Source: Orbicella franksi (Eukaryota). From it: a stretch of 64,000 bases of DNA. Shown here one piece after another: positions 6,601 through 57,301 of this stretch (position 1 is its first letter; every line of letters begins with the position of its first letter). Position numbers and translations under genes: made by a program. Under the pieces are notes generated by a model. The model was not told the DNA's origin. It saw nothing but the letters and a program-made list of their open reading frames with translations, and ran no database searches. Location: assembly GCA_964199315.1 (NCBI GenBank), contig OZ116700.1:16864001-16928000 (forward strand), in the 5' to 3' direction.

Positions 6601-9600
6601 TAGTAATTTTACGTAGCGTAATAATTAGTATAATAATATGTGTATTGATCAACAAAGTGTGTGTATTACTACAAAAAAATTACAGAACGTCCTGTAATCC
6701 AGCTCAACCATTCCCAGCCTTGCTGACATGTAATCCTCTTTGTCCATTACAACTGGAACTGCTCTCACACAATTAACACCAAAACGCAGACCAGACGTTA
6801 GGTAAGAACTGAAAGCCAGGGTAAGTCACAGGACATTCATGACGAATCAAGACAACAAACCTGGATATTGAGCAGCCATGGTTCAATTTCATTCACGCCT
6901 TGTTCACCGTCTGTGACTTTCCACATAGCGATGTACAGAGAGCGATGAGACAGGAAACATTGATGTGTGGCGTAATACTCTCGCTGGAAGACAAAATGTG
7001 ATTATTGTGTTCGAAATTAGCTGTTGAAACGCACGCTACATACTAGTTATCCAACCCTTATGGAATATCCCCCGAGTCACCCGTATTTCTTGGTGTACAC
7101 ACCAGCCTTTAGGCGAGTGTGTATACCAAGAAAATACAAGTGACTCGTAGGACTCCATCGTGATGGTATACCACAAGAAAGCGTCGCTTAACTATTTTAG
7201 TAAAGTTACCACTTCGTCAAAGCAAAACTGACAATCAGATGTCAGTTTGCTTGCTTTGCTAAGTTCAATGGCACTCACCCCTCCCCTTCCCTACCCTCCC
7301 TTCCCTAACCTCCCTTCCCTACCCTCTCTTTCCCTTCCAAGCCTCACCTGTCCACCAAAGTCCCAGGTGCTGAATTTGATGCTTGTTCTGTTGTCTGCCC
7401 GCCCAAAGGCAAAATCAGTTTTCTTTGGATAGATCCAGTCACATACATCAACACCAACAGTGGAGATGTTCACCTCAGCTTTCTTAGAACGACCTAAAAA
7501 GGTGGGATATTGTTAAAATTAGTTGGGAGGAAATAAGTCAGGATATGTAAATTAAAGTACATACTAATAAAGTAAATAAAGGAGTAAAGAGTATGTAAAT
7601 AAGGAGTAAATAAGTACGTACATACATTTAGAAGTAAATAATAGAGATAAATACTGGTAAATGTGAAGCCCCGTAAAATGATGATAAGCCACGAGCAAAC
7701 AAAGCAAACGGGCAGCACTGAAAGCAAGAGTTGCTAACTCCTCCATACAGCCACTGAGCGGCCTCAATGCACAATCACAGTTCCGCGCCTAGATCGGATT
7801 AATCAGTAACCTTCGTACACATTCAACCAACCGGTGAATTCACGGTCACCAAGGACATCGATGAACAAACATCATGCCATGAGCGCGAACCAGTGGGAAA
7901 ACAATCCAGAGTCCCCGATCGGGTTCGAAACTTTTCGAGGAATCTGAATTTTTTTTTGTTTTCGGACTGTCGTAGGCTCGCGGCATAGCGGATAACTATT
8001 CTACCATCAGAAGTAATTAAGTAAGGATACGCATTTCAACCTAAGAACTACTAACATGATCACTCCCAAAACGAACACAGCTTGTTTGCCGCATAAGGCC
8101 ATGTTTTTTGTTCAGATAGAACGACAAAGCGTTATTATGACAGGGCACATGAATTGGCACAAAACTTGAGTCGCTTATTCGATCAGCAGCTGAATGTCTG
8201 AGCCCACGGTTTCTATTCACACACAATGTACAAAACTTTAAGCTGACGTGGTAACTTTGCCGGAAGTGCTTTTGCTCGCGCAAGCTAAAGGAACAAGGAT
8301 GGTACGTTCTTCGAGAAAAGGCCAGTTTTGCAGCGAATACTACAGTTGTTCACGTACCGGTGATTGATCCAGCCCGCCTTTTCTTGACCTTTCTCTCTGT
8401 CCATCCCACAGGAGGAGAGTTCTGGTAGCTGCCTGTTCCCTCCTGTCTCAGCTGGTTCAACAATGTCGTCTTGCCGATGTTTGCAACTCCGACAAACATG
8501 AGTTTCATGCTTGGGTGAGGCTCAGACCTGACGAATTAAAGAAAGTACTAAACGGTTCCCTTCGTGAGATTTTTTTAACTCACTTATTGAAGGACAGCGA
8601 TAGGTTTGAAACATGAACTGCCAAATATACCTATATGAAAGTAAAACCCGCATCCTCCATAAAGAGAGGATGACTAACGATGGCGAAGAGGGGAACGGAT
8701 TACAATGCTAGATTCTGTAAATTGAGAGTACATCTTTCGTATTTATGACAGTTTCGAACAATAACTTGTGCATAAAACCTTCCTAACAGAACGCAGATAA
8801 TTAGAGACTTAAAATAGTGGTTCGGTGTTGTAGAACAGTACTACTGTACTTGATAAATGAAAGGAACACATTAGGAAGTGAGAATGACAAAAGATAGATA
8901 GAATGGAAACGGACAATGATAAGCAAGATTCTCTTCCTGAAGTGTTGCGTTAATCTCGAGTCCAGATCTCCCACGGCCATGTGGAAGGGAGATCCAACTT
9001 TTCAGCGTCAAACAGAGTGAGATCTGTGTACGAGATTAGCGTTGCGTGACACCAGTCACGAAACAGATAGGTTGTGATGGTGACTGACTAAGTAGAAGCT
9101 GGTTGCATAAACCAGCTAAGATACGTTAAGAGTCAGTGGACACCTCACCTTTCTAGAACTGATCTTAGATATCCAACAATATCTTTGGTCTTCTTTCTTT
9201 CCAGTACACTAGGTTCGATATCCTGTAGCTGTAGTCCCTGGTACTGCAAGTCCCACAGTTCAGACAGAAGCCCAACTTCTGCGGGTAGGCGTGTGATTTT
9301 AGTGTTGCTCACGTGCAGTGAACCAAGCTTAGAGAGGACCCCTACATCCTTGGGTAAACTCCACAGCTCATTGCTGCTCAGATTTAAAGACTGTAAGCTG
9401 GGAAACAGAATGCCTGGGCTCCGTGCGTTCGCTGGAGATGTGTCTGCGGCAGACGCAACCGATGCAGGCCGATTCCGAGGAAGCACAAAGTGAACTTCTC
9501 CAAGCTTGTTGTTGTTCAAGTCCAGCCGCTTAAGATGCGCAAGAATCCTGTGCTTTGAATGCCGGCAAAGTCGTGCTTTGCCAACCTGCAGTCCATTCTC

Positions 9601-12600
9601 TGCACTAACTCGCCGCCTCATGCTCGGCCGCTGACCTTCAGTGACACTGTAACACTGACTCTCTGTCCCATTTCCATACGGGATATTTTCAGCTATGGGA
9701 TGGAATGCGGTCAGGTTATTGTGCGACAAATCTAACGTCCCAAGTGAAGTGGGAAACAGAGCCAGTGAGGGAACTTCAGAAATGCTATTGTTTGATAAAT
9801 TCAACGTTCCAAGATTGGTGGCCAAGCAAGACAAGCCCAAAGGAATCTTTGTTATTTGGTTGGCTGACAAATCAAGTTTTTGTAGAGAAGATCCTTTTGT
9901 GGGATCAATGTCTTCCTCTTCTGAATCAGAGTCTTCTATTTCGTCGCCATGTCGTGTTCCCCACAGTTGACTGTGATGATACATTTTCAGGGGATGACTT
10001 ATTTTGCCGTTTGCTTCAACAGTTGGCATCTTGACTGGTTTTCTTTCCAAGGTTCCATTCACGTGGCTGTCAAAACGAAATAAATAAACAAGTAAATAAA
10101 CAAACATACATACAAACAGACAAGCGAATGAACAAATAACAGCTTAGATATTTGTATATGCAATAGGAAAACATGTTGTTCAATTTGCAAATAACTGAAT
10201 GAAAAAAATATATATATGGACTAAGACGAAGTCGTATTATCTGTTAATTATATTGCGTACAGAAGTGTCCAAATTACTTGTTACTTTGGTTACACATAAT
10301 TTTGCGCGCGCAAGTATGTGATTTTTAGGGTGGCAATATTACGTGTGGGTTATTGACCAAGCGTGAGTGCAAGATGGATGGTTTTTGTTTTGTTTTGTTT
10401 TTTTTGCGCGCTTATGGACCGTTTATGGCCATCTTGTTCGCTCGGGTAGCTAATAACAGCAAAGGATTCATCTTGCCCGCTCACGGAGCTAGCTATATAA
10501 TAACACACAACATTGTTGGATGAGGTTGAACATGATGATAGAGAGATTCAGAATTATCAGGGCCGAGATTTGTACTATCAGCTGAAGCTAGATGGCCGAG
10601 GTGGACATCACAAATCAGGGCGTTCATAAGGTCGCTAGTATGTGAAAGACTTCATCATTTTGGGTTTGACTTTGCATTCATTACGCTAGTCTCTACTACA
10701 GCTACATAACGTGCTAAAAACACAGGCACGCAATGCGTACAGAGAACCGTAGATACACGACTATAATATTATTATAGTTATTCTGACCTCAAGTCTACTA
10801 GCAAGCTGTCTTTGCTCAAAGACAGCACTTTAGCACGAGGAAGACTTGACGTTTTTCCATTTCCTCCACGTCCTCCTTGTCTTGCTTTCATAATTGGCAA
10901 CTTCCTCACAAAATTTCCCTTCAGATCAAGTGATTTCAACACAGGGGCAGTCCACATCTCGAAGGGAAGATTCTGTATATCGTTGTAGGAAACGTTCAGA
11001 TATTTCAGCATCGGCAATTCAAACAGACAAGTAGGCAGGGACGTTAGGTCATTGTGGTGTAACTCAATGTCTTCTAAGTGAGGGCAGTTCCAGCCTGATT
11101 CAGCATAAGTGAAATCCTGCTCGCCTTCTTCAAAAGCAAGATTTTCCTGAATGTTCTCGCACGAACTGTACGGTTTCTTTCCAGCTTTTAAAGTATTCTT
11201 TTGCGCCAAATCTTTTTTGCCTCCAAGCCAAAGACTGGGAAGACCAGAAATGGAGTTTTCCGACGCATTTAGAGTTTTCAACGAAGGCATCTGAAATAAC
11301 ACAATTGGCAGCTTCACAAGCTTGTTGGATGAAACATCCACTCGCGTTACAGTTTTAAGTGACGGGTGTAGCCCAGTAACCATCCCATCATATGGATTAA
11401 TTGTACTGGCAGCCAGAAAAATCCACTGATACTCCAACTTTGGAAGTGTCATGTTATTCCAGAGTAAAGAGATGGGTATCGCTTCCAATCTCCAGATCTC
11501 TTCAGCACTGTTGCTTGTTCTTGATGGGTGAAGATTATGTTCCTGGTCAACTTGAGCACCTATCAATCAAGAAAACGAATGCATAACAAAGATTCACCTT
11601 TTCACGAGTGTCTCGGTGGGTTTCACTGATAGCTGACAAATGGAGCATCTTAAACTGAAAAATCCGAGAACTGCAAAATTTACTAATACCCGAGATATGG
11701 ACTGAAATTTCAACTGACAGTTGAGAAATCACCAAAAAACTATAGGGAAGTGATGTACACATGGATGGGTGCTGAATTGAAAAAAATATGGTGCCCCTTT
11801 GGTCTTTCCCTCTTTCAAATTCATGGCAGTTTAACATGTCTTTAGAGTCATAAGCTCCAAAGAGTCTCCCACATTTATTTAAATATGACCCTGTGGAAAT
11901 CCTGATTTATGATTTGAATTTAGCCCCCTATTCTCTGATAAGCCCCCACCCTCCACCCTACTAAAAGATCTTGAAAAGAAATACATCCCCCTAGGACTTA
12001 ATACAGCATCAATGGTATTGACAGTGGGTAAGCAAGCATACTCAATACAAGATTTTACAAATCAATCTTTTGGACTGCGTATCTAGGCTCGATCACCAGC
12101 CGCTGTTCGGGAAAGGAGTGACCACACACGAGAGAGCGGCGGAAATCAAGCCTACTGGGTATCCAGCAACAAGCAAGATATCCACTTTTCAGCTTTCAAA
12201 ACTTTCGTCTGGACTTCAACTGGGCTTGACAAAGAAATGTGTGGAAAATGTGACATGAAACTGCCTCCTTAAGTTCTATGTACTTTCACAATACATTACC
12301 TCGTTGAAGCAGGATCATTATCATTTCAGTATTATCAGCTAAGATGGCAGAATTCAGGCACTTGTGATCAATGTCTTCAGCTCCGTTACTTAACAATAAC
12401 TTCAACATTTCCAAGTCACCCTGACGACAGGCAATCTCCAGAGGGGAAGATGTGCTAGCACCAAGATTCTCCTGTGATTCAGTTGTATTATTCTCTCCGT
12501 GATGACTTTCCGTGCCAGCAGAAAGGTTGACATCTGCACCATGTTTTATGAGTAAGCTAACAACATCTCTATAACCAACTGTGACGGCATTGTGTAAGGC

Positions 12601-31320: not shown

Positions 31321-37423
<6,103 letters not shown>

Positions 37424-39269
37424 CAATAGGAAAGACTTAAGTGAGGAGCATTCACACCAAACATTTTTTAATACTAGGGATGGTGAGGACACTGGAGAAA
37501 CACTACTTTTAAGTTGTATTTTCCAATGATTTCTTAGATTCTCTGTCTAGTGGGTTACAAATAAAATATTTTTTCTGCTTGTAAGCATCCAGGGCCAGTT
37601 TTGGCTAAGTACGATGGACAGAGCCTTGATGTTACAGGTGATCTTGCCTGTTCTTGTTATAGTTCAGGTCAAGTAGGTTTCAAAGATGACTAATGTGGCA
37701 ATATTCAAACTAAGTCCAAATGATAAAAGTATTATGAGTGAGGGATTTGTTTTTTAAAAAATGTGCATTTTGAGGCAAACATGCTCTGCTCTCATGATGT
37801 CAATTAATTAATCTTAAAAGTTTGAAGAATTACTTGGGTATCCTGCCTGGGAATTTGGCAGTCAAGGCGAATGTAGCAAGTTAGTCATCTCTCAGCAAAT
37901 TGGACCTACTTTGATATGTGTTAAACAGGGAGTCAAAACCATAAGATTCTAATAGCGGGTTTTAATTTATTACATCCATATGTATAAAATATTTATACTA
38001 ATTAGTGGCATTTACAATGGCACCAGCTTGGGTTACAGAATTTGTACATGTGGTCTTACAACAGGTTTGAATGACTAAGTTTTCAAAGAATGCATGAAAA
38101 GAGAATAATATATTATTGTACTTAATTGAAGAGATGATATGTAATAAAGTTCACATGAATAACAATAATTTTTCTTTCAGTCTAGTTCAATTCACTCTAG
38201 AAAATGGAATGATAAGTAATCACACCATGAAGAGGCTCTCGAGCTGCATATGATAACTGAAATGAACTTAGAGCAGTCTTAAGATCACTCTGTGGACTTT
38301 ACTTATCAATTTTTCTGCCCAATACCCCACTAGAGAGCTTGTTTACAGATGAAGCAGAAATAAGAGCTTCAAGCCAAAGGACATTTCACAACATTACATG
38401 CTTTTTTTAAGCTTGAATGAATCATGAATTTATATTATAATGATATTTTTAGAAATGCATGTGCATCTTGGTTTTACAAAATTGTATATTTTCTTTAAGA
38501 CCAGTAAATATCAAAAATTGCATTTTTGTTGCTAACCCTTCTCAACTCTCAATCTTATCAGGACAATAGAGTATAATATTCTTTACTAATTAGTTAAGAT
38601 TAGTCACTGACTGCAGTTCTTACAAAATATTTCACAAAATTCATAAAAAAGATTTGAAAACAGAATGGAAAATGGCAAAAGTAACCTATTGTACCTGACA
38701 CAGACAGCTGTATCAAGAAAAGCCATCAGCATAGTAGCATCAATAGCAGTTTATGATAAATGTTATGGACAAGATATATTTTATTTTTTAACAAAAATTA
38801 ACCGTGTATCCAGACATAAAGTAAAAAGAAACTGAATTAACATCTTTTAACTTATTAATAGAAATACTACATGTATTAGAATCATGCTGAATCAATAAAC
38901 TGCATAACTGACTTCTCATTGTCCAAGATTGAAGAATGTAATGGGCCATTTCCAAGTTCCATTTTGCCTCTGTGTCAAAATGAGTCATGGGAAACCATTC
39001 TTTGAGAACGTGCCCCCCGACAGGTTCATTTTCATGCAAATTGAACTCATTTTCGTGTGAAAGGTTTTGCACTAGGACTCGTTTTGAAACCGAGGCACAA
39101 AGTAACCCGAAAATTAAATGGCCGATTTTCGAACTCTGTTCAAAACGTATATCATATAAATCGTAAAAGCGCGTTTTTAAACTTTCTTTCACTTCGGTGT
39201 GTATATTATATATGAATGTTCGTTCCCGAGGTATTTACATTTACGGTGTTTCGTTTTTGATAATAAATA

Positions 39270-42200
39270 CTATTGTTTACATTTCTTTGTACTTTCTTGT
39301 TCGCCACATTCATCATCATTCTCTTCATCGTCGTCATCGTCGCTCGTATCACTATCGTACTCATCTACGACTTGAATTGTCGCCTGAACAGGAAAGTTCC
39401 GCAATAGGGTTTCACCCGAGGCATACATGTAATCATACGCAGCTTTCGTCCAAAGTAACCTAGAAGGGAAATGATACTGTCAGGTACGCGTTAAAAAAGT
39501 TCAGTCACGGTATTTTGAGATAATTTGACGGTACAAAATTAAATTGAAGGAAACCTCAATATAACAGTTTCCTAAGGTAAAAAACACCAAAGAGATGATG
39601 TTAAACCATAAAGGAACAAGGATGGTTAAGAATGGAGAAGATTGATACGGATTGAAAACGACGAACTTGAAAAATTCAGGCTAAGCTTTTCAAGATTCGC
39701 AAACCTTGATGTAGCTTATTAAGTAAACGTAGCAAACAAGCTGCAATGATGGAAAAAAGTCCTTGGGACACTGATGTAACGCCATGAATTATCTGTGTTT
39801 TACAACCAAAACTTGAAAAAGCACTCCTTAACATGCATTGCTGTCCCCCCACCCCATCCCACTGAAAAAAATGGGGTGAAAACTTTAAGAAAAGAGTACA
39901 GCTCAAAAATAGTTTCGCTGACTTGCTTTTCTAAAAGACTGTACAAAAGGAAGCTGTTTTCTCTGTTAAGGAAAAATATTGGTGAAACATTTACGTTGGG
40001 TGAAAACATTATTAAACTAGTTTGTGCGTTGTACCCATCCGACGAATTGACAGTGAAACATTGACTACTGAGGCAGCGTCCATATACGCCGGAGAAATGT
40101 GAAAACGCAGCTTCATTTCTACGATTAGGCGTACTGTCCACACTTATCCGTCACGAAAACAAAGCTTTCGGAAAAGGCTCCTCACACCGGAGGAATTTGA
40201 AAACACTGCTCATTGGCTTTTCGTTTTCTTGTGGACGGAAAACGTTTTGAAAACGAAGCTTTTCGAAAACGATGGCGTCACGATGATCATGTGATTTCTC
40301 TGACCAAGTTTTCTTAAAACACAAATCCAACATGACCGGTGATTGTCGCGTTTTTGAATTTCTCCGGCGTAGTGTGGGTGGAAAACACTTGATTCGTCTT
40401 CAGAGTGAAACCTCCGTTTTCACATTCTTCCGACAGAGTGTGGACGGGGCCAGAAACGCTATGTTGGAGGCCACCCTTCCACGCCAGTAGTTTGCCGAGT
40501 CGGGCAAGCTTCTTTCCGGCTGGCCAACAATAATCTTACACAGTTTTGACCATCTGTACATTGCATTAGCTACACTACAGTTCCATTGAAAGCTCTACAA
40601 AGAGTTTTATTCCATTTTCAAACAGGTTTATATTCGTGCAAAAAAATCGAAGGAGGTTTTCAGTCTTTTCACATCAGCGGATGAAAACTGTCGCCAATAA
40701 ACGCTCCATGCAGTGAGGGGCTGTCTCAAACATTCCGAGCTCCCCCAATATGTCCGATCCTTCAATCCGATATATTTTTTTTCTTACATCATACTAATGT
40801 CAGTCTTATTAAGTTCTAGGTTCCCTCGAAAAGCTTTTCAATTTTCGATTGCCGGCAACCTCTTTAATTTCCCGCCAAAATTTGCTGTTTTCCTACAAGT
40901 GTTATTGGAGTCGTCGCCCGTTTCAATAACGACAGATAACGTCTCCAAGTTTTACTGATTCTTGTGTACTAAAATTACCTGACTGGATGTTTAAATTGTG
41001 GTTGTTGCTGTATATTTCCTGTTGTACTCGGCTGTCCATAGGGCTGTTCAAAATAAAAGAAAAAATATATATATTGAACAAGCGACAGTACAACAGAAGG
41101 CTATTTACTAGTAAATAATTTCCCAGTGTGAAATCAATTCCCGTCCGTGTCTTCATAAATTTTCAGTTCAGCAAAATTGTTTTTTGAGTTATTTTAAAAC
41201 GCGTTATAGTTCTAAGCACGGTGATGAGCTCAAACAGATGTATAGTTGTACCGCACTGCAGAATCAAACGCCTCTCCAGCGATTACGCGAGTTATGTTTG
41301 TTTTTAGCGAACTCGACCGCCACTATATAACTGCCGATATCCTGTACCCAAACGAGTTCAAGGAAAACTACTGAGTAACTGCCGTAGTTACTGTTAATGT
41401 CATCTCTTTTCTGAACAAAACATTGAAATGTTCCGATCCGTAATAATTAGTTGTGGTTAACGCCCAAAATTCTCTGGGTTGACCTTTTTACTATCGTTGG
41501 TATTTTTAGGTACAGCCGGATGTTTTTATTTCTCTACATTTTCTCCCGATATATTTAGTCTCGGTTGCACGCGAAGTTATGAAAGTAGACGCAGTATCAA
41601 ATAAATTATTGATTATCAAGAACGAGTGCATGTATTCGAAGAGTGGTCCGTTCCTACAGTAATCAAGTTTGAGTAGTGTTTCGGCTTTAAGTGAAACACA
41701 GTTTTGTCTATCGCTCTCGTTATTCAGATTACTCTGGCTGTGAAACCCAACAGATTTCAAACCATTTCCGAGGTTGATTTACTAGGTTCGATTCTCGAAG
41801 GGTGACAAAAAATGGGTTGAAAAGCGGGCAGTTCGAAAAATTGGGGGTAAAATTAGTGTTCGATTGAGGGATAGGAAACGACTTTTGCTTCGATTTATCA
41901 GGAGGTGTGAAAAATCGAGGATATGAGAAATTGGTATTCCACTATTCAACTGTATAAACAAAGTTTACTCGCCGCTTTCCGCAATAGCTTCGTTATCTCC
42001 AAGTTCAGTGGCCGCTTACATTGTTTTCATGAATAAAAAAAATCGAGCGGGTCTTTGTTTTAATTTGTTATCAGAATATTTCCAGAGCTGAATAATATAA
42101 AATTCAATTTTTAAGCACACCATCCAACTCCGTTTAGAACACTTTTTATCAGTTCGAAGCGCTCCTAAATTGGCCAACATCTATATTTTCTCGCAGGCTG

Positions 42201-43695
42201 TGTTTTTCGGCCGCTTTTTGGCCAGAAAATTACGACACCTTTAATATAACGTGAAAAAAGGAAACTTTTCTTGGAAAGTAATAAAATAAACTTTTGGCAA
42301 TCCAACTAAGTTCAATAAAGGCAAAAACCAGAGACTGAATCAGGGGAAGCTCTTAAATCCATTTTCTTCAAACTACCGAGTTAATAGCAGCAGGGAAAGC
42401 GGTTGTGGAACTCTTACTCGATGGACATCAAACAGACACCATCAATGTCGTAAATACTCTTTTTCTTTGGCCATCGTAGCTTGATAAGATAACATGCGTT
42501 TTATTGCCATGTTTATCACCGCAGTTTGCGTGTTATTTCTTATCAAGACACCATCAAGTTATGCCGGTACTTACCATATTTTTTAACAGACCCTTACCAG
42601 CCTAACCTGCTAAGAAACTCAAAGAAAAGATAGATGCTAACTGCTTCCAAACTTTGATAACGACTAGAGAAAACAAAATGATAAAAAATATATCGATAAA
42701 TAAAATGCATCGCTGACAACATGTCCGTAGTTCGATGGAAAACGACTCAGTATTATTTCGAACCCGTTTATCGAAGCGCGACTCTTTTTTTGTCTCTTTT
42801 TTTGCCAAGCAAGTGTCAGAAATGATAAGAAATGTCTATTCAGTGGACCAGTTTCACGTTTAAGAACTGGAAAAGTGAGTATTTCGTTTCAATTTATGAT
42901 CATCATTTTGTCCGGCCTGAGATTTTCTGATTCACGGCCGCCCCTGACAAGCACAATTCATTGAAAGACTTCATTTTCATTTTTTATTTTCCATTTTTTT
43001 TTTTTTCGTTGACCAAGAAGCGAAATTTTTCTGATGGAATAAGTGCGTCCTTCATTTGCCTGAGCTTTAAAGTCAGAGCAATACAGAAACATTAAGCCAA
43101 ATTAAGAGAGAATAACAATGTTTTTTTCAAAGGAAACTTTAATTTCGTTACCGTGGAAAACCATGAATAGTTATTGAAGGGCTGCTTTCCCTTACCGCCT
43201 CTTGTGAAATACGCAAGCTTGCCCAGAAAAAACAGTCATTGAAAAAAATCGAAGTAATTGACGAAAAAGCGGTCAGAACTAACAGGGAACAAAGAGATGA
43301 CGCGCGTGACATATTTTGGCGAAAAGTGCAACCTTCACTGGATATATTTAATTGACAATTTTTTTTTTCTTTTATTGTGTAAAATTTACATGCTACGGCC
43401 ACAACGAATTGTGTTGCGAAATACATCTCCAAGAATATAATTTTAAAGTTGTCGAAATGGAATAACTTACCGTGTATCGTGGTCGGCGTTTTCTCTGGCA
43501 GTCCTGGGGACTCTCTACCCAAGGGCGCCAAATTTTGCTGAAATGATCAAACACAGATGAGACAAGAAAATATGTCGTTTTTCACGAATTTAAGAGCCAC
43601 AGATACGTTCAAATGCCCAGATTCATGGATTTGGCGGGTGTACGTGTACGAGTAATTGGTTTTTGTGTTTCGTCCATAATTCACCGGTAAAACAT
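39270..43695 (-). CDS. RIPPLY: Ripply-family transcriptional repressor adaptor (WRPW + Ripply homology domain; 110 aa, or 118 aa if exon 1 is 45152-45186)
   Basis: Exons 43685-43695 (tentative), 43471-43537, 40979-41043, 39270-39459 splice in phase: MFYR-KIWRPWVESPQDCQRKRRPRYT-PYGQPSTTGNIQQQPQFKHPVR-LLWTKAAYDYMYASGETLLRNFPVQATIQVVDEYDSDTSDDDDDEE...*. This matches the vertebrate Ripply pattern WRPW...F.HPVRL.WPKSK.YDYLY...E.LL.NFP[VI]QATI plus an acidic tail. Confidence 0.92.
40071..40451. mobile_element. Harbinger-like MITE in Ripply intron
   Basis: Ends AGGCAGCGTCCATA.. / ..GTGTGGACGGGGCC are imperfect TIRs; a second copy lies at 5102-5390. Confidence 0.7.
41903..41912 (+). promoter_or_regulatory. 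Perfect T-box half-site AGGTGTGAAA (Ripply intron)
   Basis: Exact match to the Brachyury/Tbx consensus half-site; function untested. Confidence 0.4.
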
Positions 43696-44517
43696 GGCCA
43701 GTACATAAGAAACCCTTTGTAAGCCCAATTGATTCCGACCTAGAACATTTGCACACGAAAATCTCTTCATATAGCCCCTTCGTGCTTTCTTTTCAGTAAA
43801 ACGTTTAACACGACATTGACTGTTGACAGAGGGCTTTGTGAAATTCCTTCTTTGCATTGCTCATCGTCAATTCAGCGCTCACGAAATATTCCTTAGCCGA
43901 TTTGTTTTGAACACGGTGGCTTCCATAATACACAATTTACAAATCAGTTGCAACAAAGTACTTACTTCATCTTGTGGTTTCAGTATAAAAGATCCTTTTA
44001 GCTACAACAGGTCCTTCTTTTTAGCTTGCTCAGTTTTCCTGTCAATTCGAAGAGGAAAGGAGCGATGTTATTACAATTTCAAGAATTAATGAGCTAACCT
44101 TGAGTCACGAAATCATTCTATAACGACAAATATGTAGTCATGGGTTGTAAAACTACCTTACAATATGTTCGGTACACGATTAGGATTTCTGCCAAGCTCC
44201 TTTCAAATCGGCACACAGACGTTCTAGGCAATTTCAAAACTTTGTCAAAATTGCACTGACTACTGAACAAGGCAAGAGCTGAGGTGTTAATGGCCAACGA
44301 AGTGCGTTTTTTCGAGTTATCTTATCATGTTGTACAAGAGTTTGCCCACGTAAACTTCCTACCATGAGTCACGTAAAGATCTTCTTGCCGCGTAAATCGT
44401 ATTTGAGCTTTATCAAGAGGGAAGAGTTCAGGAACGTGTGAAATCTTTGGCAAAATGTCGTAGAAGCGCCAAAATATAGTCTGGACGTGCCTAGTGTGTC
44501 GTCCAGAGCCAGGAAAT

Positions 44518-44527
44518 TTTCACACCT
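44518..44527 (-). promoter_or_regulatory. Perfect T-box half-site (TTTCACACCT) upstream of or within the first intron of Ripply
   Basis: Exact match to AGGTGTGAAA on the minus strand; function untested. Confidence 0.45.
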
Positions 44528-45231
44528 TAGGGCTGCACTCGGCCAATCACTCGAGCTCTCAAAGACAACTTATTGTTTTGACCGTCAAAGGGCTTCCACA
44601 ACACCGTGTGCTTCGCACTGCTCGTGCCGTAAACTTGTAAACACAGAGTATGAATTCACACATTTAAAAAGCGAATTGGTACTTTTCAGGCGGCAAAACT
44701 AATGCAAATTTCGTTGCTGTGACATGTGTGCTGTCGGAGACGCAAAAAGAATGTAAATAAAAAGCGGAACACACGTTTTGCGAAGACACATGGTTTATTG
44801 GTCACGCAAAACAATTAAAATCTTGTTTCTTTGTTTCGCCCGACTCTATTTTAAAATGTAAATTCATCTGTATTCTGTATTTTGCAAAGCCTATTATCGG
44901 ATCTTTTGCGGCCGGTTTTTGCCGTTAATCAGAACCCTTTTTAACGCTTGGCGGATATTTTTCGGGGGGCAAGGAGTAAAGCAAGATCTTTAGTAAACCT
45001 GACAAATTTTTTAATACCCTGTTAATTTGTCGTTTTATTCGTAGAAGTGTAAAATACTTCGCAAAATACTATCACCAAATTTCACGGGACGTATGAAAGA
45101 TTTATTAGCCATGTTTCCACGCTACCCCCCGTCAGTGCAGCCCGGGCTGACCCTCTCGGGATAACAGACTTGAAACCCTCCGCCATGTTTTTGCGTCTTG
45201 GAGGAATCGAAGGTCTTCTGCTTGTTCAGTT

Positions 45232-51200: not shown

Positions 51201-52762
51201 GTCACACAGCGAATTGTTCAGCTTGTTCAGAATGGTAACTGGCCCTACATTAACAGATGACCACGTTTTGGGAATTATAACAAGCATTTTGAGTAGGAGT
51301 GACCTGCAGCAACCTACAAGGTTGACATTTGAAGAATTCACAAATGTAAGTCATGGATCAGTATTTTTAACTGTTGAATAGTNNNNNNNNNNNNNNNNNN
51401 NNNNNNNNNNNNNNNNNNNNNNNNNNNNNNNNNNNNNNNNNNNNNNNNNNNNNNNNNNNNNNNNNNNNNNNNNNNNNNNNNNNNNNNNNNNNNNNNNNNN
51501 NNNNNNNNNNNNNNNNNNNNNNNNNNNNNATAGCTGCATCAATAAGGACCTTAAGGACGTTCGTGTGAAAATTTTCCAGTCAAAAGTTTTTTCTTAATTT
51601 TTTACAGCGGTCAGATAATGAGTTACTTGTGTCAGAAATGCAAAAAGAAATGGGGGGTCACCATCTTTGTTTCTGAGATAAAGCATGTGGAAAACTACCC
51701 TGATTTTGGAAAATTGGCGCACGTAATACGGCATTGTCTACAGAGGTTTATAGTTAAAAATATCAAAGGTGAGTCAGCAGAGGCAAATGATCTTAGTCAT
51801 ACCGGTATTTTGTAGAAGTGGGTCTGTTGCGTAAATAATTCCAAATTTTACCAGTGTTTTCACAAAACTTAATCCTCCAAGAGGCATTTGAAACCATCGC
51901 ACAGATAAACAAAGAGGTAGAAAAAATGGAATTTGATGGCCAGTGGATTTTGCAAGAACTTCAAACTTCTGGTTGGTAAATTTTATTCATTTTTTCACGA
52001 AATGTAGAAAATCAGTAGAGAAAATGATCCATCAAAAGAAAAATAGGGGTCTCTGAATGTCCAAGATTGTTAAATTCAGGCAAAGCTATAGCAATAGCCA
52101 TCTGCCCTATCATTGTTTATTTTATTACCTAGCACGTGCTCTCGTGCATGATGTGGCGAATGAATTTGTGTGTGCAGTAAGAATGCGCAGAAACAATTAG
52201 CATGCACATGCTTAAGATCCAACAACGGCAACGCCAAGGACAATGTCAATTAAAAATGAATTTATATTTTACCTACGAATCTCACGATACTCTAAAGTCA
52301 TTTACTTTGTTAATCACTATCAAAACTATCATGAAACTGAATCTGGGACACAGTGATAAATTTGAAATAGAAATTTGAAACATTAGCAATCGTGCTTTGC
52401 ATGCCCCACACAATGCAGAATTTGGTCATTTCACATTGTTTTCCAGATGATGGCAAAGAAATGTACCAAGGATAATGATGCATGTGCTGACACAGCCATT
52501 GTTTTGCTCATTAAACCTCTTGATTAGTGACATTCCTGTTTCCATTGCCATCATTACAGAGGAAAGCTTGTGTCTAGCTAAAGGACATCTGTGTGGGTAG
52601 TTTATTAATAGTCAGCTTCTGGTTGTGTTTTAAGTGAAAGAATTATTTAACTATCAGTAAATGTTATGGCTGTAATATACTGGCTTCATTTCAATTTTGT
52701 GCTAGATTGTCTCTGATGAGGAGATAGAAGAACTGTTTACTGTGGAATTGCAACTTCCATAA
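45232..52762 (+). CDS. Calcineurin B / CHP-like myristoylated EF-hand protein (181 aa)
   Basis: Exons 45232-45234 (ATG only), 47595-47655, 49616-49855, 51161-51345, 52706-52762 (546 nt, in phase). MGAGAS myristoylation motif; F..KEI.KL.KRF, F..IPEI..NPI, FAFQLLDTDNDGYLSHSEL, LTFEEF. The last exon is inferred across an assembly gap. Confidence 0.85.
48620..49581. mobile_element. ~960-bp MITE-like element with imperfect TIRs
   Basis: CAGAAGGGGGACATTGGGGGGGTTTG ... CAAACCCCAGTGTATGTCCCCTTCTG, with AATACCACA subterminal repeats. Confidence 0.55.
50650..51065. repeat. Degenerate AAGATCTT-rich minisatellite-like tract
   Basis: Many GATCT/AAGATC motifs at irregular ~8-12 bp spacing. Confidence 0.7.
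51383..51529. other. Assembly gap (147 N)
   Basis: Run of n. Confidence 1.
51555..52211. mobile_element. Degenerate TTAA-flanked non-autonomous element (Kolobok-like)
   Basis: TTAA|GGACGTTCGTG ... CATGCACATGC|TTAA, imperfect TIRs. Confidence 0.45.
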
Positions 52763-54625: not shown

Positions 54626-57301
54626 TTAAAGAGAACACTCTTCACCATGCTTCACTTTGTCAATCAAATTTCCCAGTGTCCTTGTTATAAACTGAAGACT
54701 ACCCACATCAGAGAGTCTATGACCTCCATCTTTGATGAGTGTCACACAAACATCATTACTTTCGAGCTGGTTTACCAGATCAAGTGAAACCTGGTATGGT
54801 ACATCACTGTCTTTCATGCCATGGATGAGACACACAGGGCAATGGATGGGGTATAATTCATTCTCTTTTAAAATGTGCTGCCGTGCCTCTTTGATAACCT
54901 TTAAATCTAACACATATGGTTCTTCACTGTGCTCTGTAGGTATGATCCATTTTCCTGTGGACTCTACCTCTGTCTTTATAGCATCAGGGAGATTGTTGTA
55001 ACGACGTGACAAAAAGTCCACAGCACTAGCTATCCCAACCAGACCCTTTATCTGGTCAGGTTTTGTCATGGCAACCAGAAGCATGATCCACCCTCCGAGA
55101 CTTGAGCCAACCAGGATTTGTGGACCTAGAAATGTAACACAGTAAAGGCATCTGTCAAGAATTCAGTCTAACATTTGTCAAGAGTTCAGTAAAAATAATC
55201 ATGCTTTAAACAAGAAGCTTGCAGTTTATGGATAAAATTGTGTTGTTTAAGATGGACTCCTTTTGTTAAAGGAAATAAAGTTTTAATTGTTATTATGTTA
55301 AAAAAGATTGCATATTTCACAGTGTGACAATCATAACCAAACTGGCATTAAGTTTTTAACCCACTGTTAATGTCACTTCTGAAAGGTCAATTGCTGTCAT
55401 ATACTGTGTATGATAACTTTTTAATACTAGTACATAACGTTTAGTGATCTAGCTGCTTTAAAAATAGGAAAGTACCCAAAACTGATGTACAGTTAGATTG
55501 ATGACTGTGGCTCCCTGCAAAATAAAATTTCAAAATTATAGGCATGATCAAATCCAGCATGTCTTCAGGAATCAGAAGTAATTATTGTTGCAAGATTTAC
55601 ATGAGTGATGTAATGATTTTGCTGGTCTAGACGTTTGTTTTTTGCAATGTGAACTTTCAGAACTTGAAGTATTTCTATTCCTACTCGTTTTATGGAATGC
55701 TGGTACACTACTGGGTTACCCAGCATTTTATTCAATGCTGCCCATTTATACACCTGGGTGGAGAGAAAAACTATTTTTGCCCAGGAACACAATGCAACGC
55801 CTAGACTGGGACCCTGATCCAAAGACAGTTTACTAACCACTACTCCACTGTCATGGCCTTCCACCAGGGAGAGGGGGTCAAGAGGTCATCCTCGATTAAA
55901 CACCTTAATATGAATCTTAGCACCCTTCACACATCTGTTCACTAGGTGCAATCTAGCAGTCAGTAGTTTTTTTTTATAGATCTACGAATGGGTGAAATAT
56001 CTGTCGCAAGGAGGGTGCACACCTTGTGCATCAACGTGTCCATGCCACACCAGCTTGTATCCATAGCTGGATGGAGGCTTGTCATCAGGCTGACATGCCA
56101 AAGTAGACATTGCGTCTAAACTGTTTGTGAGTTGGGTGTGCAGATGAGCTAGAAAATTATGCAACCAAGGGAATTAAGCCTATAGGTATAGATCAAAACT
56201 ATTTTATTACCCTTTTCCAGTGCTACATGCCTTACTGTTGCCACCTAGGAAAGTTTTTGTCAGTTTTCGACAACTTCTGATGGCCAATCAAACTGTGACA
56301 ACTTGCCAGTGTTTTCAAACATTTGCAGGTTGAGACTTTTGAAATTCACAAAAGAGTGACTAAAGAATTTGACAATTCAACATCTACACCCTCAACAGTT
56401 TGGCAACTTCCCATCCTTAGATTGGCTGCTTCAAATAGAAGCCAGGAAAAAGTTGTCAAAAAGGTGACAAAATTATTAAATCAAAAACTTTCTGAAGTAA
56501 AATTTCCAAAGGTGATCATTAGGTGTTGATAAAAATAAAGTGTGATGCTGTGAACAGAAAGCTTGTAAAATAGTGATAGCTTCACCATAACTGGAATGAG
56601 AGATGGTTAGATATACCCACTAATCTGAAATTTGGGGAAAGGGAATAGAGGGGGTGGTGGTAGCCTGCATAGCAGGCGTTCATATTTCTAAAAGCACGCA
56701 AAGGGAACGAATTTTAAAAACTGTAGTCAAGTGCAAAAAGAAAAGGAGCAGTAGGGGAGGTGGGGGGTAACAAAAATGAATCCTTTCCTCCCCTTACCCT
56801 TTTTCCTTTATATTTTTGCTCACCCCTCCCCACTTCTTCCCAGTTTTTGCTCACCCCAGGCGCACGTTCGTTTGCTTACTCGCTTGTATCTCCACAACAG
56901 ACCCTTGAAAGTCCGAGAGATCGAGGGAGGGCGGGGAGAATTCGGAAGCCATGCAGCTTACCTTTTGCTACTTTGTCAAGAATTGCGAGTACATCAGCTT
57001 TCCTCATTCCAACTGTACATTCTTGGCTTCTTCCACTAGACATGCCATGACCCCTGTAGTCGAATCTCACGTATGATTGTCCAGTGCTTCTACAGTAACG
57101 TTCTAGTGCCAGCGCTTTCGTACCCTCCATGCTGGACATCAGCCCCGGCAAAAAAATAACCCCTGGAGATTTTCCCGGTAAGTGTCGATATGCTACAAAT
57201 TCCCCAGGAGCTGGGGATATATACTGAACTACTGACTCAACTGAAGAACTCATTCTTTTAAAACAAATGGCTGATACGCGAGCTAAAAGAAAGTTCCTCA
57301 T
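54626..57301 (-). CDS. ABHD10: ABHD10 alpha/beta hydrolase (palmitoyl-protein thioesterase / acyl-glucuronide esterase, mitochondrial; 279 aa)
   Basis: Exons 56962-57301 and 54626-55125 (840 nt). Arg/Ser-rich leader MRNFLLARVSAICFKRMSSS; GKSPGVIFLPG..S.M.GTKALALE, RFDYRGHG, GPQILVGSSLGGW (nucleophile), HGMKDSDVP, GGHRLS. Confidence 0.94.

Follow-up and report, generated by a model that had tools for sequence, protein, structure and literature searches.

The window analysed here is a stretch of 64,000 nucleotides from the stony coral Orbicella franksi (assembly GCA_964199315.1, contig OZ116700.1, positions 16,864,001 to 16,928,000), and its minus strand carries a gene of the Ripply family, a family known chiefly for its part in patterning the somites and pharynx of vertebrates. 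The gene has five exons, four of which are coding, its transcript spans at least 39061-44723, and a single copy was found within the window by tblastn. An earlier note on this DNA, written from the letters, had proposed three minus-strand exons spliced in phase across 43470/41044 and 40978/39460; both introns have GT..AG ends, and both junctions are present in assembled transcripts of RNA runs. The product is likely to act as an adaptor between T-box factors and Groucho, as outlined below.

The coding sequence (CDS) was rebuilt by script from the minus strand, and the letters of 39200-43800 were inspected. The WRPW-bearing exon (43537-43471) reads KIWRPW...RYT, the next (41043-40979) reads PYGQPS...HPV and ends with the AG of an arginine codon, and the last (39459-39270) supplies the G of that codon and continues with LLWTK...FPVQATI..., an acidic tail and the stop. 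The introns between them end in GTAAGT..AACAG (43470/41044) and GTAATT..TCTAG (40978/39460), and the joined frame runs K-I-W-R-P-W...R-Y-T / P-Y-G-Q-P...H-P-V-R / L-L-W-T-K...F-P-V-Q-A-T-I... through the acidic tail to the stop. None of exons 3-5 has an ATG of its own, and the open reading frame (ORF) containing WRPW is closed by an in-frame stop just upstream. The start is instead the ATGAA at 43970-43966, at the 3' end of an exon running from 44038 to 43966, which has the donor GTAAGT and is joined to 43537 to give M-N-K-I-W-R-P-W. Exon 2 therefore contributes ATG plus the first two bases of the second codon, and the CDS adds up as 5 + 67 + 65 + 190 nt, or 108 codons and a stop codon. Stylophora, Desmophyllum and Oculina share this 5-nt coding start. 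An ATG at 43677 was considered as an alternative start and rejected: it opens a 22-codon ORF (MDETQK...) with no donor phase-compatible with the acceptor at 43538/43537, and the transcript gives ATGAA at 43970-43966. The translation offered in the earlier note is identical to ours as far as it goes but ends short, with 17 further residues following ...DDDDDEE to ...KKCKQ and the stop. Likewise, its span of 39270-43695 places the three exons correctly but misses two upstream ones, the 5' untranslated region (5'UTR) exon and the ATGAA exon, and the transcript is wider.

Transcripts provide direct support for this model. Used as a protein query, the last exon matched P0002, a 108-aa protein assembled from a public RNA run; the contig that encodes it, L001 (965 nt), forms five aligned blocks on the window, with identities of 96-100% (Table 1). 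Splice junctions were taken from assembled contigs of four RNA runs, from four separate studies, aligned to 39000-44800. The joints 39459|40979 and 43537|43966 are present in all four runs and 41043|43471 in three, while two alternative 5'UTR joints, 44037|44156 and 44037|44362, are found in the RNA contigs. All four Ripply-bearing runs are labelled as coral metatranscriptomes ('coral metagenome'). The AATAAA closest to the 3' end of the gene on the minus strand is at 38780-38785.

Table 1. Features of the Ripply gene and its 5' region, in window coordinates, listed in the direction of transcription.
Feature	Position	Strand	Basis
CCAAT-box-containing block GACCAATAAA, upstream of transcript start	44794..44803	-	script; part of a conserved block (Orbicella, Oculina, Desmophyllum; four-coral alignment)
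TATA-like TTTATTTACA, 29-38 bp upstream of the L001 5' end	44752..44761	-	tatttaca/aatttaca/tatctaca in four corals
L001 raw alignment blocks	44723-44362, 44039-43966, 43537-43471, 41044-40971, 39461-39061	-	refined by splice-site inspection
Exon 1, non-coding 5'UTR; alternative longer form to 44157	44363..44723	-	L001:1-361, 100% identical; donor CATG|GTAGGA; RNA joints
Candidate T-box half-site AGGTGTGAAAAT inside exon 1, in the gene's sense orientation	44516..44527	-	motif search and four-coral alignment
Exon 2, 5'UTR and ATGAA (43970-43966)	43966..44038	-	L001:362-434; acceptor GACAG|GAAAAC; donor ATGAA|GTAAGT
Exon 3, (N)KIWRPWVESPQDCQRKRRPRYT; WRPW Groucho-type motif and basic patch	43471..43537	-	script, L001, RNA joints
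Exon 4, PYGQPSTTGNIQQQPQFKHPV and first two bases of the R46 codon	40979..41043	-	script, L001, RNA joints
Exon 5 coding part, Ripply homology domain core LLWTKAAYDYMYASGETLLRNFPVQATIQVV, acidic tail, stop	39270..39459	-	script, Pfam
3'UTR, at least to 39061	39061..39269	-	L001 ends at 39061

Membership of the Ripply family, which the earlier note had read from two motifs, is well borne out. Pfam describes the family by PF14998, a model of length 86 with a gathering cut-off of 27 bits. The full coral protein scores 92.6 bits (E 2.3e-26) over model positions 1-84 of 86, the last exon alone scores 49 bits (E 9.6e-13), and the exon 3 piece corresponds to model positions 1-19. Ripply is the only Pfam domain in the protein, which has no DNA-binding domain. 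WRPW and FPVQ are both intact, as had been claimed: WRPW occupies residues 5-8, N-terminal to the homology domain, and FPVQ occupies residues 68-71, inside a block that is invariant across Anthozoa. Ten well-modelled anthozoan proteins, when aligned, show no variation in I-W-R-P-W or at 26 positions of the homology domain, the latter following the pattern HPVRL.WTK..DY.Y..GE.LLRNFPVQATIQ, and the coding part of exon 5 has 22 invariant columns among 15 anthozoan sequences. Over a wider set of corals, sea anemones, jellyfish, amphioxus, Ciona, lamprey, teleost and sturgeon, W-R-P, H-P-V, P-V-Q-A-T and several further columns remain invariant. The Ser/Asp/Glu-rich acidic C-terminal tail, which reads DEYDSDTSDDDDDEENDDE... 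in the coral, is a feature of all aligned members, and the coral length of 108 aa lies within the roughly 100-150 aa typical of the family. The 'NLS-like RKRRPR' that the earlier note also listed as intact did not fare as well, since this basic patch is kept only among robust-clade corals and is absent from Acropora-type proteins (P0037), Nematostella and Actinia. By BLASTP, the stretch reaching from WRPW through FPVQATI is 43% identical to zebrafish Ripply1 over 79 aa (E 2e-21), and all of the ten best Pfam-bearing language-model neighbours in the ESM Atlas are Ripply clusters (Ripply1, Ripply2 and Ripply3).

The structure of the gene extends this relationship beyond the two motifs. Exon structures were solved for Nematostella (L003), amphioxus (L002), teleost ripply2 (L004) and three corals, with GT..AG ends and exact reproduction of the protein required. 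Four coding exons with intron phases 2/0/2 are found in the window, the three other corals, Nematostella, amphioxus and teleost ripply2. Intron 1 lies a few codons before WRPW, intron 2 immediately before P-Y and intron 3 inside the Arg/Lys codon of H-P-V-[R/K]|L. Because intron positions and phases match over such a distance, they point to descent of the whole gene from a common ancestor and not to convergence on two short motifs. We regard this as strong evidence, drawn from sequence comparison, that coral and chordate Ripply share common descent. An origin before the cnidarian-bilaterian split, suggested earlier, is thereby backed by intron positions and phases common to amphioxus and teleost.

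Selection on the gene was assessed by pairwise dN/dS (the ratio of nonsynonymous to synonymous substitution rates) among four stony corals, namely the window, Stylophora, Desmophyllum and Oculina. The window CDS gives 0.08-0.14 against the other three, at dS 0.74-1.6, and all pairs fall within 0.08-0.17. Ripply is under purifying selection in stony corals. Its surroundings are also maintained. In Stylophora, Desmophyllum and Oculina, Ripply is flanked upstream by an EF-hand gene on the opposite strand and downstream by a convergent thiolase gene; the EF-hand neighbour is also found in Actinia, and the thiolase is also found in the window. There the thiolase (ACAT-type) occupies 35666-39090 on the plus strand, with GT..AG introns at 35945|36776 and 36882|37249. 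Its last exon, from 37249 to about 39090, abuts or overlaps the Ripply 3'UTR. RNA contigs run from the Ripply 3'UTR into this exon, and one unstranded contig spans both genes.

The earlier note had called the gene hidden, which it is not. RefSeq already has XP_020622033-36, 'protein ripply1-like' (108 aa), in Orbicella faveolata, and Ripply-like entries are named in at least seven other cnidarians: Stylophora pistillata, Desmophyllum pertusum, Acropora muricata, Acropora cervicornis, Montipora capricornis, Actinia tenebrosa and Rhopilema esculentum. The gene is already known, since RefSeq contains it from the same species or from a sister species. The RefSeq protein of Rhopilema, a scyphozoan, has LWRPW and FPVQAT, and a Nematostella 'predicted protein' carries PF14998. 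The window product is identical at 107/108 residues to XP_020622036.1, 'protein ripply1-like isoform X2 [Orbicella faveolata]' (D86E), at 106/108 to isoform X1 (D86E and S30N), and throughout to a metatranscriptome protein (P0056). With the coral metagenome runs that carry Ripply, the match to O. faveolata confirms the coral origin that had been supposed for this DNA. Position 41027, in exon 4 at residue 30, is G or A, giving Ser in the window and Asn in contig L001, and isoforms X1 and X2 differ at this same residue. Because S30N is the G/A difference also carried by L001, X1 and X2 look like alleles filed as isoforms, not splice forms. A second copy or an alternative exon 4 was considered as an explanation for X1/X2 and ruled out by the single tblastn copy in the window.

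A profile built from ten anthozoan proteins matched 251 clusters (E up to 0.001) among 1.84 billion representative proteins. Ten of these were looked up and comprise amphioxus, lamprey (two), Ciona ('uncharacterized'), sturgeon, shark, teleost, jellyfish and two without a name. In a word-indexed search with a wider profile, all named matches among the best 120 of 506 are vertebrate, Ciona or cnidarian. No protostome or ambulacrarian Ripply was found among these best 120 of 506 matches and the ten looked-up of 251 clusters, which does not in itself show absence. The Ciona intestinalis protein (P0151; XP_018667778, 'uncharacterized protein LOC108949545') scores 85.7 bits on PF14998 and has LWRPW and FPVQATI with a much longer linker, and is thus an unnamed tunicate member of the family. 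Full-text searches of the literature library used returned no paper treating cnidarian Ripply, and the word co-occurrences they did return were incidental.

The 5' region of the gene holds a possible clue to its regulation. Vertebrate Ripply genes are under T-box control, and the half-site AGGTGTGAAAAT lies 557 bp upstream of the ATG in the window. All 12/12 bases are the same, in the same orientation, at -576 in Oculina, -563 in Desmophyllum and -562 in Stylophora, and the site forms a fully conserved island in the four-species alignment, with variable bases just 5' of it. The four corals compared here are all robust-clade, and the T-box motif was picked after the hypothesis had been formed. 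In Actinia, AGGTGTGAAG is found at -516 from the Ripply ATG. The conserved half-site hints at T-box control of Ripply and should be treated as a lead, not a finding. An intronic T-box site at 41903-41910 has no conserved counterpart in other corals, and GGTGTGA is not enriched in the window (10 found vs 6.8 expected). Further upstream, the CCAAT-containing GACCAATAAA is a putative promoter element, and transcription probably starts near 44723, as judged only from the end of contig L001; one low-depth contig (X13) extends upstream beyond that end.

Several side observations concern this same region and the rest of the window. In Actinia tenebrosa (L008), T-box-like AGGTGTGA and TGGTGTGAAAAA are found at -2377 and -2354 from the Ripply ATG, 23 bp apart and in the same orientation. 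On the minus strand, at 44431-44443 and 44541-44579, exon 1 has further blocks conserved in four corals. They comprise TTTCAC[A/G]CGTTCC, which resembles a T-box site in reverse and lies some 85 bp downstream of the half-site, a reverse CCAAT (GTGATTGGCC) and a Sox-like AAAACAATAAG. Within the last Ripply intron, summed contig depth over two stretches (39582-39775 and 39970-40551) exceeds that over the Ripply exons by factors of hundreds to thousands, reaching about 15000, and loose ends are numerous. Transcribed repeats of high copy number, or pieces of transposons, are the probable source, outside the gene proper. Elsewhere in the window are two long ORFs with leucine-rich repeats (LRR_4/LRR_8) and another ORF with a prolyl-oligopeptidase (S9) match (9148-11566 and 54629-55084, both minus strand), as well as a 147-base run of N at 51383-51529.

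Care must be taken to ask whether such a locus is a working gene at all. Its exons are very short, none contains a long ATG-initiated ORF, and the family has been studied mostly in chordates, all of which could invite the explanation that this is a chance set of ORFs, a decaying pseudogene, or contamination or transfer from a chordate. This explanation has been refuted and retains only a negligible probability, because spliced transcripts come from four independent studies, dN/dS is 0.08-0.17, the gene is flanked by the same neighbours across several coral genomes, homologues exist in sea anemones and jellyfish, and the PF14998 score is more than three times the cut-off. The product of this single-copy Ripply orthologue is instead likely to be a 108-aa, largely disordered adaptor that would reside in the nucleus. 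By analogy with vertebrate Ripply1/2/3, its C-terminal homology domain (FPVQ) would dock on the T-box domain of at least one coral T-box factor, and Groucho/TLE would be recruited through WRPW at its N-terminal end. The T-box factor held in this complex would change from an activator to a repressor, or be destabilised. T-box factors may in turn switch Ripply on via the half-site in the 5' exon, which would create a negative feedback like that of Tbx6 and Ripply in vertebrate somitogenesis. Taken as a whole, this reading of stony-coral Ripply as a T-box/Groucho adaptor with T-box-driven feedback is one that we hold to be likely. Both protein contacts, the nuclear location, the repression or degradation outcome and the feedback loop are things we infer, and a vertebrate-type mechanism is the most likely one for coral Ripply on motif conservation only.

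The vertebrate literature itself suggests another possibility. FPVQ in zebrafish Ripply1 and FPIQ in mouse Ripply2 are essential for association with Tbx6, and vertebrate Ripply lowers Tbx6 and Brachyury protein levels through this FPVQ contact (PMC4178057). Cnidarian Ripply could mainly lower T-box protein levels without Groucho repression, or have partners other than T-box factors, in which case the vertebrate 'switch' would be a later specialisation. The linker and the basic patch do vary strongly between cnidarian lineages, and Ripply transcripts occur in colony metatranscriptomes, not only in embryos, both of which would suit such a role. Against this, every good anthozoan model has an unchanged WRPW and the scyphozoan RefSeq protein carries it too, a pattern that argues for selection on Groucho recruitment, and the coral homology domain is nearly identical to the vertebrate segment that binds T-box proteins. 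We consider this alternative unlikely and favour the adaptor that joins T-box factors to Groucho.

A number of observations nevertheless weigh against that adaptor and its feedback. No T-box site was found at the Nematostella locus from -3000 to +1500 of the ATG, even with relaxed patterns, and AGGTGTGA is not enriched in the 64-kb window (2 found vs 1.95 expected), with both of its occurrences lying inside the Ripply gene. The candidate half-site falls within the transcribed 5'UTR, in a generally conserved region with several other perfect blocks, among them CCAAT boxes, the TATA-like element and a Sox-like AACAAT, and the conservation of the half-site could serve another purpose. The RNA runs that carry Ripply resemble colony metatranscriptomes, and searches of the literature library used returned no binding, localisation or expression-pattern data for cnidarian Ripply. 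A search at E up to 1 found no relative with a solved structure, and an AlphaFold2 model built from a 16-sequence alignment is of low confidence (pLDDT 56.7, pTM 0.26); the one element it shows, at residues 45-77, is a tentative strand-helix-strand. The model fits a mostly disordered adaptor and proves nothing.

The gene call itself adds nothing, given that RefSeq names cnidarian Ripply and the Pfam model recognises it. Of more use is the picture of Ripply as a strongly constrained single-copy gene across Anthozoa, present also in a scyphozoan, with an intron architecture common to chordates. If the adaptor works alike in cnidarians, then the switching of T-box factors from activators to repressors, perhaps with feedback, would be part of the toolkit of the ancestral eumetazoan, and Nematostella would offer a simple system in which to study it. 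It is possible, and rather doubtful at present, that the full T-box/Ripply/Groucho circuit, including activation via AGGTGTGAAAAT, was in place in the cnidarian-bilaterian ancestor and that protostomes and ambulacrarians subsequently lost it or changed it past recognition. Were this true, the family would be left in Cnidaria and Chordata only, and the feedback at vertebrate somite boundaries would be the re-use of a much older module. Cnidarian Ripply is thus a modestly interesting target for evolutionary developmental biology, being unstudied, with an apparent Cnidaria-plus-Chordata distribution, an intron architecture in common with chordates and a conserved candidate T-box site.

Comparison with known systems helps to place the coral protein. 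Hairy/Hes-type repressors also recruit Groucho/TLE via a WRPW tetrapeptide, but they have a bHLH-Orange domain with which they bind DNA themselves, and their WRPW sits at the very end of the C-terminus, whereas the coral protein lacks a DNA-binding domain. Vertebrate Ripply1/2/3, for instance zebrafish Ripply1 (P0249), have the coral layout, with WRPW near the N-terminus, a linker and then the homology domain, F.HPVRL.W...DY.Y..GE.LLRNFPVQATI, followed by an acidic Ser/Asp/Glu tail. The coral protein differs in having 3 residues before WRPW, where the vertebrate proteins compared have 26-40, and in its WTKA-AYDYMY, which is one residue shorter than the vertebrate WPKSKSYDYLY. Vertebrates have three paralogues and the coral one gene, and the coral has no somites or pharyngeal pouches to pattern. 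Amphioxus Ripply is expressed in somites and serves as a somite marker (PMC4660845, PMC11136973). In Branchiostoma lanceolatum (P0203/P0205) it is, like the coral gene, a single-copy invertebrate gene with the same intron positions and phases, and its homology domain, like that of the coral, is of the shortened type W[ST]K.-.YDYMY. Amphioxus Ripply differs from the coral protein in its longer N-terminus (36 residues before WRPW), its longer linker and its score on PF14998, which is 68 bits compared with 92.6 bits for the coral.

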